DNA of 63,748 nucleotides, counting the filler, from Octopus bimaculoides (Eukaryota): assembly GCF_001194135.2 (NCBI RefSeq). It is 6 parts of 6 records of this genome, joined end to end, with 100 filler letters (N's around TTAATTAATTAA, not from the genome) between each part and the next. Parts side by side here need not be neighbours in the genome. Positions count along the whole stretch, not along the records: positions 39,195 to 48,188 come from NC_068983.1; positions 48,289 to 58,806 come from NC_069008.1; 4 more parts are not named here. The stretch is one strand, 5' to 3'. This document shows positions 48,120 to 58,604 of this stretch, piece by piece (positions within the stretch are counted from its first letter, which is position 1; every line of letters starts with the position of its first letter). Both the position numbers and the translations under genes were made by a program. The notes beneath the pieces were generated by a model. It was not told the origin of the DNA and ran no database searches. It worked only from the letters and a program-made list of their open reading frames with translations.

Positions 48120-48450
48120 TCACACACACGCACACACACGCACACACACGCACACACACACACACAAGCACACACACACATACACACANNNNNNNNNNNN
48201 NNNNNNNNNNNNNNNNNNNNNNNNNNNNNNNNTTAATTAATTAANNNNNNNNNNNNNNNNNNNNNNNNNNNNNNNNNNNNNNNNNNNNTTATATTATATA
48301 TTATATATTCCATATTCTATATCCCACATTAATTTTACAAGAATATAAATAAAACATAAAAAACAGACAGAGTTGGAACTCTTTTAAATAAAATAATATA
48401 TTCCTCTATACACGATCATACAAAACCCTTTTATTGTATTTATTTTTACT

Positions 48451-48489
<39 letters not shown>

Positions 48490-48491
<2 letters not shown>

Positions 48492-48725
48492 GTGTGTATC
48501 TTTGTGTCTGTGTTTGTCTCCCCACCCCGCTATCCTTTGACGACCAATATTGGTATGTTCACATCCCAGTAACCTAGCAGTTTGGCAAAAGAGACTGATA
48601 GAATAAATTCTAGGCTTACAAAGAATAAGTCCTGGGGTTGATTTCTCTGACTAAAAAACCCTTTAAGGCGGTGCTCCAGTATGGCTGCAGTCAGATGGCT
48701 GAAACAAATAAAACAATAAAAGAAC
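48490..48725 (+). mobile_element. Family C SINE tail, CpG-decayed
   Basis: Aligns to 39262-39472 with CG>TG/CA changes (ACATCCCAGTAACCTAGCAGTTTGG vs ACGTCCCCGTAACACTTAGCTGTTCGG). Confidence 0.85.
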
Positions 48726-48779
48726 AATATTTAATTATAAAAATACAGTAGGATTTTATTATATATACGTTGAATGGCT

Positions 48780-48851
48780 ATGGGAGTCCAGTGGAGCAAA
48801 ACAGAAATCAAAGGGCTTCATAAATAAAGAAAGGGTTGAGAATCATTGATG
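48780..48851. mobile_element. Possible hAT/Charlie-type MITE right end
   Basis: Ends GGTTGAGAATCATTG, close to the inverse of a CAGTGGTTCTCAACC-type TIR; left end not found. Confidence 0.3.
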
Positions 48852-50003
48852 CAACAAGTTGTCTGAAAGCCATCTTAGCCAGCGTCCCTCATCAGCAGGG
48901 AAAGAAATGCAGTTGGGCTTCTACTTATATTGACAGCTTCACAGATGAGTCATGTTCATCCATGGAAGTGATGAGGGCCAATTAGTCATCTTCAAGGATG
49001 ACTGATAACTGATGGTTTGTGACCATCTGTGATCCAGTGGCAAGAACAGGTCAAGACAACTGAGGATGGAGGCAGACACTGNNNNNNNNNNNNNNNNNNN
49101 NNNNNNNNNNNNNNNNNNNNNNNNNNNNNNNNNNNNNNNNNNNNNNNNNNNNNNNNNNNNNNNNNNNNNNNNNNNNNNNNNNNNNNNNNNNNNNNNNNNN
49201 NNNNNNNNNNNNNNNNNNNNNNNNNNNNNNNNNNNNNNNNNNNNNNNNNNNNNNNNNNNNNNNNNNNNNNNNNNNNNNNNNNNNNNNNNNNNNNNNNNNN
49301 NNNNNNNNNNNNNNNNNNNNNNNNNNNNNNNNNNNNNNNNNNNNNNNNNNNNNNNNNNNNNNNNNNNNNNNNNNNNNNNNNNNNNNNNNNNNNNNNNNNN
49401 NNNNNNNNNNNNNNNNNNNNNNNNNNNNNNNNNNNNNNNNNNNNNNNNNNNNNNNNNNNNNNNNNNNNNNNNNNNNNNNNNNNNNNNNNNNNNNNNNNNN
49501 NNNNNNNNNNNNNNNNNNNNNNNNNNNNNNNNNNNNNNNNNNNNNNCACAATACAAATTAGTGCCCACCCAGAATATTCTGAAGTCCACCACTCTGCAGA
49601 GTGCCAAAGTCTGGTGATGGGCCTGCAGGGCCGCTGGATCCAGTTTTTGCATGTATAGGTAGGAAAACCCTAATATGCTAATTAACCCATAACTGGAACC
49701 AAGACAGTTGCTACTACTCCAGGTCAAAGTAGATTTCGGAACAAAAGATGGTTCTACACACTTCAAAACTCTGGACTTCTCAAACAAGGGCCTCACTACT
49801 AGATGCAGTTTAAAATTATACCCAATATAGATGAGTATCAAGTCCCTAGACACATTTTGTGCTTGGGCAGCAGTCAAGTTTGCCCACACCTGAAGACAGC
49901 CCTGTGATGTCTATCACACATATCAGTAAAATCATTCTTTCACAATGAGTGAGCTTTGTGCTACATAATGATACTCTAATATTTCACAAGAAAGTAAGAC
50001 AAA

Positions 50004-50688
50004 GAGCTGGCAGAATCATTACCACACCAGGCAAAATGCTTAAAGGCTTAGTGGCACTGCATTCATCTTGATGTTCTGAGTTCAAATTCCACTGTGATTG
50101 ATTTTGCCTTTCATCCTTTTGGGGTTGATAAATTAAGTACCATTTGAACCCTGGGCTTGATGTAATTGACTAACCCCTTCCCACAAAATTGTTGACCTTG
50201 TGCCAAAATCGGAAACCCTTATTATTATTATTATTATTAAGACAGTTAAGGCAGTGAGCTAGCAGAATCATTAGCACACTGGGGACAATGCTTCACAGCA
50301 TTTCATCCATCCTTACATTCCAAGTTCAAATTCCACTGAGGTCAACTTTGCCTTTCATCCTTTCAGGGTCTATGAAATAAGTACCAGTTACACACTTGGG
50401 TGAATGTAATCAACAACCCCCTCCTCACAAATTGCAGGCCTTGTGCCTATAATAGAAAGGATCATTATTTAGGCAGTTTGCTGGCAGTATCATAAACATG
50501 CTGAACAAAATGCCTAGCAGCATTTCATGTCTTTATGTTCTGAGTTCAAATCCTGCCAAGGTTGACTTTCCCTTCCTCTGATTGGGAATCGGTAAAATAA
50601 GTCCCAGTTGAATATTGGGGCTGATGTAATCAACTCTCCTCCTCCCAAAATATTGCTGGCCTTGTGCCAAAATTTGAAATCAACATAA
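50004..50688 (+). mobile_element. Three tandem family A SINEs (50004-50220, 50250-50468, 50471-50688), CpG-decayed
   Basis: Each has GCTGGCAG/GCTAGCAG head, GTTCAAAT B box and TTGCCTTTCATCCTT-type core. Confidence 0.9.
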
Positions 50689-56400: not shown

Positions 56401-56618
56401 CTCTTTTCACATTTCTGATTACTCTGTCAAAAGTGATGCTCATTTATTCACATCGTTTTCAATTAATCATTCATTATCTCACAGCTTTGAAATGTTCATG
56501 ATGTGATTGTTCCTATTCAGAATGACGTTGTAAGTGTGAGAGGTCAAATCTGGCAGGGTTTGAATATAAAGCAAGCAGAATGTTTGGGCTGGATATAGCT
56601 TGTTTAAATGCTACACAG
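56401..56618. mobile_element. Decayed piggyBac-type MITE (TTAA flanks)
   Basis: TTAA-CTCTTTTCACATT ... AATGCTACACAG-TTAA, consistent with an eroded CCCTTTAGCATT TIR. Confidence 0.5.
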
Positions 56619-56732
56619 TTAATGCCTATAATTAGTGGTGCATTTAGCTGCAATTACTGCAATGTTGAGTGCAATGACAAGCTCTAAAAACTGTCATTTT
56701 CAAGCACATAAAGTAACACACATTTTATCCCT

Positions 56733-57129
56733 TTATTTTTTACTTGTTTCAGTCATAACATTGCGACCATACTGGGGCACTGCCTTGAAGAATCAACACT
56801 AGCATTTTTTTTAAAACTTGGTACTTATTCTATCGGTCTCTATAGCCAAATTGCTAAATTACAGGGATGTAAACACACCAACATTGGTTATCAAGTAGTG
56901 GAGGAGGTGGACACAGACACAAATATACACACACATACAGATATATCTGTCTATATATATATAAATATATGACAGGCTTCTTTCAGTTTCCATCTACAAA
57001 TCCACTCAAAAAGTTTTAGTCTGCCTGAGGTTATAGGAGAAGATACTTGTCCAAGGTACCAAACAGAGGGGCTGAACCTGGAACCATGTCGTTTGGAAGC
57101 AAGCTTCTTACCACACAGCCACTCCTGTG
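56733..57129 (-). mobile_element. Family C SINE, complete (head, internal microsatellite, tail), CpG-decayed
   Basis: Head matches 53555, tail matches 39262. Confidence 0.9.
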
Positions 57130-57154
57130 TCTGATATTTTGCTAGTATAATCTG

Positions 57155-57918
57155 GGATCTTTTTTAAAACGGGGGCCACATTTTTCATTAATGTTTTACG
57201 TAGTGTTTTTGGTACCGAAAGACTTTCAAACTTCGTATACTTATCTATTTTGTGTTACAGAACAGAAAAATATTTTTGTCTTCGAATTTATTTCACGTAA
57301 AAAAATTGTCTTATTTCTATAATTTCAACCAATCACTGACAAGTATTCAGTTGTTTATATTTACTCCTTTGGCTGATTAAGCCATAGCTTCGTTTTATTT
57401 GCTTTTTTCATTTTAAATTTGCTTTTTTCATTTTCTTTTTTTTCTTCTTCGTTTTATTTGCTTTTTTCTTTTTNNNNNNNNNNNNNNNNNNNNNNNNNNN
57501 NNNNNNNNNNNNNNNNNNNNNNNNNNNNNNNNNNNNNNNNNNNNNNNNNNNNNNNNNNNNNNNNNNNNNNNNNNNNNNNNNNNNNNNNNNNNNNNNNNNN
57601 NNNNNNNNNNNNNNNNNNNNNNNTTCTTTTTAAATTTGCTGTTTTACCCTAACCCTAACCCTAACCCTATCACCGATAGAATTGTTTCAGAATCGTTTGT
57701 TTATGTAGTCGGTACTTAATGTATATCGGCTGAATGGACGTCAGTGATTGGTTGAAATTACAGAAATACGACAACTTTAACATGGAATAACTTAGGGATT
57801 TCTTTTTTTTTAAGAAGACTAAGAGAAAAAGATATTTTATATGACACATTCTACCAGTGTTCCAAGTTTCAAAGTGTGTCGTTAATGAAAAATGTGGCCC
57901 CCGTTTTAAAAAAGATCC
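57155..57918. mobile_element. Non-autonomous DNA transposon (Merlin-like) with perfect ~37-bp TIRs
   Basis: GGATCTTTTTTAAAACGGGGGCCACATTTTTCATTAA at both ends, inverted; flanks ATAATCTG/GCAATCTG; subterminal IR AATTTCAACCAATCACTGAC; internal (CCCTAA)3. Confidence 0.85.
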
Positions 57919-58259
57919 GCAATCTGAAAGTAGAACAGTAAAAATGTGCAAGACTGTTCTAAATTCTTTAACCATTGCTATTATCCACATTCCAATAATA
58001 GCGCTTTGTATCTAAAACTGGCCCCATTCTTGTAGGAAGAATTCAAGTGATTAAGAAATAAAGGTAACATGGTTGCAAGCTTACAGGTATAACATACATA
58101 TATACATACTATATAAGTATGTACATACAAATATACATATATGCATAGTCTAGATCTGTATATACATACACACATATATGTACACATTGTAGCTGCTTTC
58201 TCATATATGAGCAAAGCCATTGCTGGAAAGAATCATTGAAATGAGTCCCTGATAATGCA

Positions 58260-58585
58260 TTGCGAGTCCCTTGTATGACTCTTGAGCCCCACCAAAGATT
58301 TGTACATTTTATTGCATGATGCACAGTTGTCCTGGCTGGCAGAAGGAACAGGTGTGAGAGGTCAAATCTAGCAGGTGCTTCGGTATGAAGTCCTTTAACA
58401 TGCCTTTTTAATCCTCCAACTGAAAAGCACACCTTTCCACAGGTTGCACATGTTCTGTTGTGAAGAAAAGCCATTTCGCAATTTACAGGTGGTTCATTCC
58501 TCTGAGTTCTCTGAATGCTGACCAGGTCTGCATGACTCAGGCATTTCCTTCCACAAATCACACACATAAAAAATAACATGTGCAC
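58260..58585 (-). mobile_element. LINE C-terminal relic with two C2H2 zinc fingers (RTE-like)
   Basis: FMCVICGRKCLSHADLVSIQRTQ (degenerate) and TCATCGKVCFSVGGLKRHVKGLH; no upstream RT, preceded by (TATG)n. Confidence 0.55.
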
Positions 58586-58604
58586 ATACCTACATACATA
58601 CATA

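Follow-up and report, generated by a model that had tools for sequence, protein, structure and literature searches.

The subject of this work is a block of CpG-poor DNA in the genome of Octopus bimaculoides. It forms one piece (positions 48289-58806, without an assigned strand; record NC_069008.1 of assembly GCF_001194135.2) of a window of 63,748 nucleotides, that is the whole stretch of DNA presented, in which six pieces from six records of the genome are joined end to end. All positions count along this window, and the sequence analysed is that of 48289-58806, which holds 8594 read bases in five contigs separated by four assembly gaps (runs of N). The piece is repeat-rich, CpG-depleted animal DNA and consists almost wholly of interspersed repeats and micro- and minisatellites: short interspersed elements (SINEs) of families A and B, a SINE-like family C, a tetranucleotide array, an element with terminal inverted repeats (TIRs) and a terminal segment between two microsatellite runs. 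The original prediction had taken the block for the fossil methylation footprint of a hidden gene body, or else for a foreign scaffold piece, sharply bounded on both sides and with nearly every CpG site decayed throughout.

CpG depletion of the piece

At a guanine plus cytosine (GC) content of 0.38, ~309 CpG dinucleotides are expected in the piece. Only 100 were counted, corresponding to an observed/expected ratio (o/e) of 0.32 (Poisson p ~1e-43), while the control dinucleotide GpC is normal with an o/e of 0.89 over the whole piece. The deficit is thus real, as had been predicted. The decay products of CpG, TG plus CA, are found at an o/e of 1.2-1.5. Sequence that appears unique within the piece contains 19 CpGs where 102 are expected (o/e 0.19; GpC 1.09; TG plus CA 1.43), and among the repeats the CpG o/e is 0.25 for SINE A, 0.21 for SINE B and 0.31 for family C. 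It is therefore the old sequence, i.e. the unique-like DNA and SINE families A and B, that has suffered the strongest loss. Over the three adjacent SINE A copies at 49985-50690, the local CpG o/e is as low as 0.05-0.11. A CpG o/e well below 1 (0.32 overall, 0.19-0.25 in old sequence) combined with a GpC o/e near 1 (0.89-1.09) is the pattern that characterizes a germline-methylated compartment.

The depletion is regional in that repeats and unique-like sequence are equally hit, with the exception of three discrete units. Normal CpG content is found exclusively in these units, at 51672-52096 (o/e 0.90), 57155-57918 (1.2) and 58600-58806 (1.04). The decay is consequently not as uniform as had been proposed. 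The sharp edges noted in the original prediction are the two ends of the piece, where it is joined to unrelated pieces, and do not represent a step in the genome. The suggestion of a foreign scaffold piece finds its trivial explanation in the same fact, the block being one piece of a concatenated window. The only internal step in CpG content, at 58.6 kb, leads into a stretch of just 207 nt that is bounded by microsatellites, which is not the shape of a sharp domain boundary.

CpG decay in SINE copies

Seven copies of SINE A are present, three of them head to tail on the plus strand (~49985-50222, 50236-50466 and 50462-50690) and four in reverse orientation on the minus strand (~52296-52530, 52530-52752, 52860-53085 and 53230-53445). 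The seven decayed 5-mers listed in the original prediction (GGCAG, TCATT, CTGGG, TTCAT, TACAT, TCCAC and GTCAA) were recovered in this order at 50250-50341. An alignment of the seven copies yielded 15 inferred ancestral CpG sites with a total of 102 cells. Ancestral CpGs were assigned to sites at which CG occurs alongside TG or CA, and also to sites at which some copies have TG and others CA; the latter were counted because TG and CA are not interconvertible by a single step. CG is left in 11 of the 102 cells, 37 are TG, 44 are CA and 10 are occupied otherwise, and 81 of the 91 losses (89%) are transitions. At non-CpG positions, transitions amount to 9.0% per site (13.0% at C/G and 6.4% at A/T) and transversions to 8.4%. 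The copies have diverged by ~17% from their own consensus at non-CpG positions, and pairwise identities reach only 66-83%.

On the basis of this general divergence, 63.5% of the ancestral CpGs should have been retained in the seven copies, compared with 10.8% observed (p 2e-28). The original prediction had itself named the possibility that the copies are simply older as the point on which it might fail. The copies are indeed old, but their age falls far short of explaining the loss. When the comparison was restricted to the nine sites at which at least one CG survives, a choice that is biased against a claim of methylation, 11 of 60 CpGs were found to be retained (p 9e-13). The rates in SINE A give a CpG decay that is ~12 times faster than change at average sites and ~8 times faster than change at other C/G sites. 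SINE B shows the same behaviour, with 30 cells, five of them CG and 20 TG or CA, at a non-CpG transition frequency of 8.3%. The loss is CpG-specific, is not simply a matter of age and lies far beyond chance.

One and the same site is TG in some SINE A copies and CA in others, which means that decay proceeded independently in each copy after the copies had separated. The left and right groups are similar in non-CpG divergence but differ in the number of ancestral CpGs that they keep: 0, 0 and 1 of the 15 in the three plus-strand copies (1/45) and 3, 1, 4 and 2 in the four minus-strand copies (10/57; Fisher p 0.02). This hints at an uneven history of methylation or at different insertion times.

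Units with normal CpG content

The first of the three CpG-normal units is a tetranucleotide array, (GAYR)n, detected on the plus strand at 51672-52096 by Tandem Repeats Finder (CpG o/e 0.90). Its in-register units are GACA (28), GATG (25), GACG (22) and GATA (14), such that the variable dinucleotide occurs in the four states CG, TG, CA and TA, i.e. as a CpG decay series. The counts roughly agree with independent decay of the two positions of a CpG, blurred by slippage. Like units are clustered in runs within the array, and its GpC o/e is only 0.33.

The second unit is the TIR element at 57155-57918, to which no strand was assigned. Its TIRs, 57155-57191 and 57882-57918, match at 37 of 37 positions (GGATCTTTTTTAAAACGGGGGCCACATTTTTCATTAA), and subterminal inverted repeats at 57285-57340 and 57740-57793 match to 84%. 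The CpGs of the element are intact. It contains 16 of them; calculated over 57155-57921, with 17 CpGs, the o/e is 1.2 and that of TG plus CA is 0.93. The motif AATCTG abuts the left end, and GC followed by AATCTG is found on the right, i.e. with an offset of 2 nt; alternatively, a target duplication with 6/8 matches can be read. Gap 4 interrupts the element, with similar T-rich 20-mer motifs on either side. Directly after this gap, at 57646-57669, follow four perfect telomere-type hexamers, ACCCTA (CCCTAA/TTAGGG), which form a (CCCTAA)4 run. No other copy of the element was found within 48289-58806, and a homologue search with its open reading frame (ORF) did not return any protein-level relative. 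The element looks like a recent insertion of the type of a miniature inverted-repeat transposable element (MITE).

The third unit is the terminal segment at 58604-58806, again without assigned strand, which is located between a (CATA)n and a (TA)n run. Of the 8 CpGs in 58600-58806 (o/e 1.04), six are crowded into 58605-58646, whereas the preceding 452 nt have an o/e of 0.16. The return of CpGs after ~58.6 kb, as stated in the original prediction, is therefore correct. Between the microsatellite runs the segment measures ~175 nt, has a GC content of 0.39 and is laid out like the retroposon copies of the piece, and it bears no similarity to any other part of the piece. Most simply, the CpG-normal units are younger additions, or in the case of the array self-renewing, rather than the edges of a domain.

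Repeat families and assembly gaps

The interspersed repeats belong to multi-copy short elements with simple-repeat tails, (TTA)n or (TA)n, with seven copies of family A, four of family B and two of family C. In appearance they recall the tRNA-type SINEs that abound in the octopus. Families A and B are 160-230 nt in length, and B-box-like motifs, GAGTTCAAATTCC and GGTTCCGGGTTCAGTCC, were seen by eye. A tRNA-related head was not detected in these heavily decayed copies, neither by ARAGORN, which found no tRNA, nor by a comparison with the tRNA family of Rfam, which gave no match at E up to 1. Within the SINE A arrays, three copies on the plus and four on the minus strand, only trinucleotide tails separate neighbouring copies in two places, namely (TTA)7 between the first two copies of 49985-50690 and (TAA)n(AAG)n(AAC)n. 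The arrangement gives the impression that tails of older copies served as insertion sites for newer ones.

SINE B is represented on the plus strand by a copy at 53554-53744, whose (TA)n tail enters gap 2 and which is 87% complementary to 54861-55024 and ~80% complementary to 56943-57132. The corresponding minus-strand copies were aligned at 54861-55030, in inverted orientation with respect to 53554-53744, and at 56965-57140. A fourth copy on the minus strand, at 52120-52275, is old and diverged, with ~71% identity to the other B copies. Family C comprises the copy that the original prediction had mentioned at 48490 (48495-48725, plus strand) and a second copy in the opposite orientation that was delimited by pairwise alignment (56725-56971, minus strand); the first copy is 72% identical to 56732-56971 of the other strand in an alignment of 268 nt.

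A core of 30-46 nt of SINE A (TTTGCCTTTCATCCTTTCGGGGTCGATAAA..., for example at 50350-50385) recurs with 91-100% identity in seven metagenome contigs of the Joint Genome Institute (JGI), where it is part of a different repeat family. SINE superfamilies that share conserved central domains have been described, namely CORE, V, Deu, Nin-DC and Ceph (PMC4758252), and the SINE A core presumably is a conserved central SINE domain that is common to other invertebrate hosts. The seven contigs have a GC content of 0.41-0.48 and a CpG o/e of 0.6-1.1. They were rejected as a CpG background because they stem from other organisms and have only these 30-46 nt in common with SINE A. The SINE B core did not give a match in the metagenome scan, and a literature search with four SINE consensus strings remained without a match. 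Part of the unique-like DNA, 49652-49824, is 71% identical at the nucleotide level to positions 471-652 of a 934-bp Logan contig (SRR11869385) and is hence a member of an interspersed repeat family as well. Visual inspection of this contig showed in addition a diverged SINE B-like copy and a TG microsatellite.

Gap 3 (55479-55930, 452 N) is flanked by a duplication in the same orientation. The left duplicate (55172-55478, plus strand) and the right one (55931-56220, plus strand) begin with 166 nt of unique sequence that are identical at 166 of 166 positions (55172-55337 and 55931-56096) and continue into (CTT/CCT)n runs that differ by insertions and deletions only. The match is exact and ends in a microsatellite at the contig end, whereas other repeats of the piece are only 66-87% alike; for these reasons the duplicates are probably overlapping contig ends that were not merged, or else they represent two microsatellite alleles, and a true gap probably does not exist here. 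Some 300 nt, with one CpG among them, have thus likely been counted twice. A comparison of the flanks of gaps 1, 2 and 4 did not reveal an overlap. Gap 2 (857 N) falls into a TA/ACAT microsatellite between the inverted SINE B copies 53554-53744 and 54861-55030, which are 87% complementary over 164 nt and face each other with their TA-rich tails. This hairpin-prone pair may explain the break in the assembly. An open frame on the minus strand is present on both sides of gap 1 (49910-49548 and 49079-48942), but no sign of coding was seen in it. No credible reading frame depends on any of the gaps.

Search for a gene

Twenty non-repetitive ORFs were compared with Pfam and none contained a domain above the cut-off. 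The best match among them came from an open frame of 176 codons on the minus strand (58112-58639) with one C2H2 zinc-finger-like motif (CATCGKVCFSVGGLKRHVKGLH), which scored 15.9 bits against zf-C2H2, below the cut-off of 25.2. A homologue search with this ORF was empty, and ten ORFs of the window, including the ATG-started version 58112-58603, did not have an exact match in the sequence collection. A 25-nt string within the frame, GTGTGAGAGGTCAAATCTRGCAGG at 58345, recurs at 56535; it was rejected as a repeat as the similarity does not extend any further.

A second open frame, of 121 codons, runs on the minus strand into gap 1 (49548-49910), has no match in Pfam and is a remnant of a repeat family rather than a gene. 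Its sole real relative is an ORF of 151 amino acids on the 934-bp Logan contig described above. The latter was not accepted as evidence for an exon, being a junk ORF that marks the repeat family. Three matches of the 121-residue ORF to bacterial repeat proteins, obtained in a sensitive search, consist of many weak stretches and were judged spurious. Homologue searches with a translation of the CpG-restored SINE A consensus were as empty as those with the ORF of the TIR element.

A significant strand asymmetry of the kind associated with transcription was not detected in the polarised substitutions of the SINE copies (~270 events), with p >0.1 for each of the comparisons A>G versus T>C, C>T versus G>A and TG versus CA. 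An imbalance on the plus strand with fewer TG than CA (p 0.0045) was discarded as a transcription signal since it is fully explained by base skew. Rfam returned 77 sub-threshold matches to microRNAs (mir-297, mir-3149, mir-466) and small nucleolar RNAs, which were all dismissed as low-complexity noise on TG, TA and ACAT microsatellites; they are located at 50783-51250, 53086-53234, 54640-54894 and 58088-58147.

Discussion

Taken together, we consider it probable that the old sequence of this piece was subject to long-standing CpG methylation in the germline, that the CpG-normal units were added later and that the intron of a broadly expressed gene is the likeliest setting. 5-Methylcytosine deaminates to thymine, and a hypermutability of CpG transitions of the size observed is a known result of cytosine methylation in the germline. 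According to the proposed course of events, the SINE copies and the unique-like DNA would have been methylated over a long period, CpG would have changed to TpG or CpA ~10 times faster than other sites changed, and about one fifth of the expected CpGs would be left. The TIR element, the (GAYR)n array and the terminal 200 nt would be too recent, or in part self-renewing, for this decay to have become apparent, and we infer that CpG content within the piece tracks the time of residence in a methylated region. As the loss of CpGs is no less marked in unique-like DNA than in the SINEs, methylation would have been regional and not aimed at the elements. A methylation footprint is well supported by what can be read from the sequence, and the phenomenon as such is familiar, in general as well as from this group of animals.

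The setting is suggested by the octopus literature. In O. bimaculoides, methylated CpGs concentrate in gene bodies, with strong enrichment in introns and exons; methylation is found on the bodies of ~14,000 genes and is stable across tissues (PMC9476566). All classes of transposons are consistently low in methylation and have a high CpG density, and intergenic DNA is low in methylation as well (PMC9476566). Since germline-stable methylation in the octopus is mainly a matter of the bodies of broadly expressed genes, an intron would be the likeliest setting for the piece, and a hidden gene is plausible on these grounds. The two halves of the original prediction have accordingly fared differently. 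The fossil footprint is supported by a loss that is CpG-specific, leaves TG and CA behind, proceeds 8-12 times faster than other change and extends to unique-like DNA, whereas the gene body has not gained an exon, a domain or a homologue. All three may in any case be absent from an intron.

Several points weigh against our interpretation. Neither an exon, nor a domain, nor a homologue, nor a strand asymmetry of substitutions was found in the piece. Six of the 15 ancestral CpG sites of SINE A are without a surviving CG and were inferred from mixtures of TG and CA only. The youth of the CpG-normal units is deduced from the perfect TIRs and from the lack of decay itself. Finally, the rarity of a CpG o/e of 0.2-0.3 is judged only against a rough genome mean of ~0.6 that is partly based on approximate values of genome size and GC content. 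For this estimate we take the octopus genome to have an ungapped size of ~2 Gb and a GC content of ~36%. Combined with the 80.66 million CpGs reported for O. bimaculoides, counted on both strands (PMC9476566), these values lead to the mean o/e of ~0.6, and the old sequence of the piece would, again as a rough estimate, be 2-3 times poorer in CpG than the genome on average.

The main alternative to a gene body is a methylated repeat domain. The piece could be part of an intergenic domain, rich in repeats and satellites, that attracts methylation in its own right, with no hidden gene involved. It consists almost wholly of SINEs and micro- and minisatellites, no exon was found, and in O. bimaculoides satellites are relatively more methylated, as are intergenic repeats when compared with intergenic DNA that is free of repeats (PMC9476566). 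Such a domain is less expected, given that octopus transposons are said to escape methylation: all their classes are low and methylated CpGs are enriched in introns and exons (PMC9476566). The depletion of unique-like sequence, which equals that of the repeats, also speaks against it. We regard this alternative as rather unlikely.

It is unlikely, too, that the piece is nothing special, in the sense that such depletion is typical of old sequence throughout the genome and that the contrast originally noticed is one between old copies here and young copies elsewhere. The copies inside the piece are indeed old, as is evident from their ~17% non-CpG divergence, the young-looking TIR element has its full complement of CpGs, so that CpG content follows age within the piece, and the unrelated 934-bp contig with a related repeat has a CpG o/e of 0.19. 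Old age, however, does not dispense with methylation, which an 8-12-fold hypermutability of CpG still requires, and most CpGs in octopus transposons and intergenic DNA are unmethylated, with a high CpG density on transposons (PMC9476566). The roughly estimated genome mean, 2-3 times the value of the old sequence, argues in the same direction.

Alternatively, a methylated domain could genuinely end where CpGs return at 58.6 kb, for instance at the promoter or transcription start site of the hidden gene, which would be free of methylation. Eight CpGs in 207 nt, six of them within 42 nt, after 452 nt at an o/e of 0.16 would fit such an edge, as would the existence of gene class MP2, in which the body is methylated and the start site is not (PMC9476566). 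On the other hand, the segment is only ~175 nt long, has a GC content of 0.39 and lies between (CATA)n and (TA)n runs in the manner of the retroposon copies of the piece, two further CpG-normal units are situated well inside the block, and the piece ends a mere 200 nt further on. We therefore hold a domain edge to be distinctly unlikely. The same low probability has to be assigned to the more far-reaching proposal that the block represents an unannotated, germline-methylated transcription unit whose promoter-proximal region is unmethylated and begins with the CpG cluster at 58605-58646. Age alone, with CpGs lost at the general substitution rate and without any methylation, is next to impossible: the low pairwise identity of the copies speaks for it, but it is refuted by a CpG retention far below the predicted one, by the predominance of transitions among the losses and by undepleted GpC.

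Long-standing germline methylation of the old sequence, probably within an intron, thus remains our preferred interpretation. It implies that sequence alone preserves a readable record of how a locus was methylated, here in the form of an 8-12-fold faster decay of CpG than of non-CpG sites in dated SINEs. This signal is textbook deamination of 5-methylcytosine, fits the published mosaic methylome of the octopus and does not call for a new principle. In practice its use is modest, namely to flag a locus that is probably located in the methylated compartment and likely in a gene body, to warn of apparent steps that arise as artefacts of joining in concatenated windows, and to point to the assembly duplication at gap 3. 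Should the piece after all prove to be an unannotated transcription unit, CpG decay of dated SINEs could offer a way of searching the whole genome for broadly expressed genes that lack annotation, and of dating the onset of methylation at each locus.

Comparison with known systems

With non-autonomous DNA transposons of the MITE type, the TIR element shares perfect TIRs of 37 nt, subterminal repeats, the lack of coding capacity and a length of ~760 bp. Unlike a typical MITE, it has an ambiguous target-site duplication, a second copy was not found in the piece and its middle is an assembly gap. Cephalopod genomes reportedly harbour tRNA-derived SINEs, the elements OR1, OR2 and OK of Ohshima and Okada (1994). 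Families A and B resemble these elements and the Ceph-SINEs in length, copy number, B-box-like motifs and simple-repeat tails, but differ from them in that a tRNA part is not recognised by the tools applied and in that A, B and the SINE A core were matched to no named family or domain.

The copies of Alu and other SINEs in methylated vertebrate DNA undergo independent decay of CpG to TG or CA that is several times faster than change at other sites, and CpG retention in such SINEs is a clock that depends on age and on methylation. The octopus copies, which derive from a CpG-rich SINE of tRNA type, share this independent decay. In vertebrates, nearly all copies decay because transposons are themselves methylated, whereas octopus transposons are reported to be mostly unmethylated. 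In the octopus, the decay of a SINE should therefore depend on the place where it has landed.

The closest parallel is provided by the mosaic gene-body methylation of invertebrates, as described for O. bimaculoides (PMC9476566) and for oyster and other molluscs. The piece departs from this model in that the depletion is broken by three CpG-normal units and is known here from DNA sequence alone. It agrees with it in the CpG-specific loss, the excess of TG and CA at normal GpC, the depletion of repeats and unique sequence alike and the ~10-fold hypermutability of CpG transitions.

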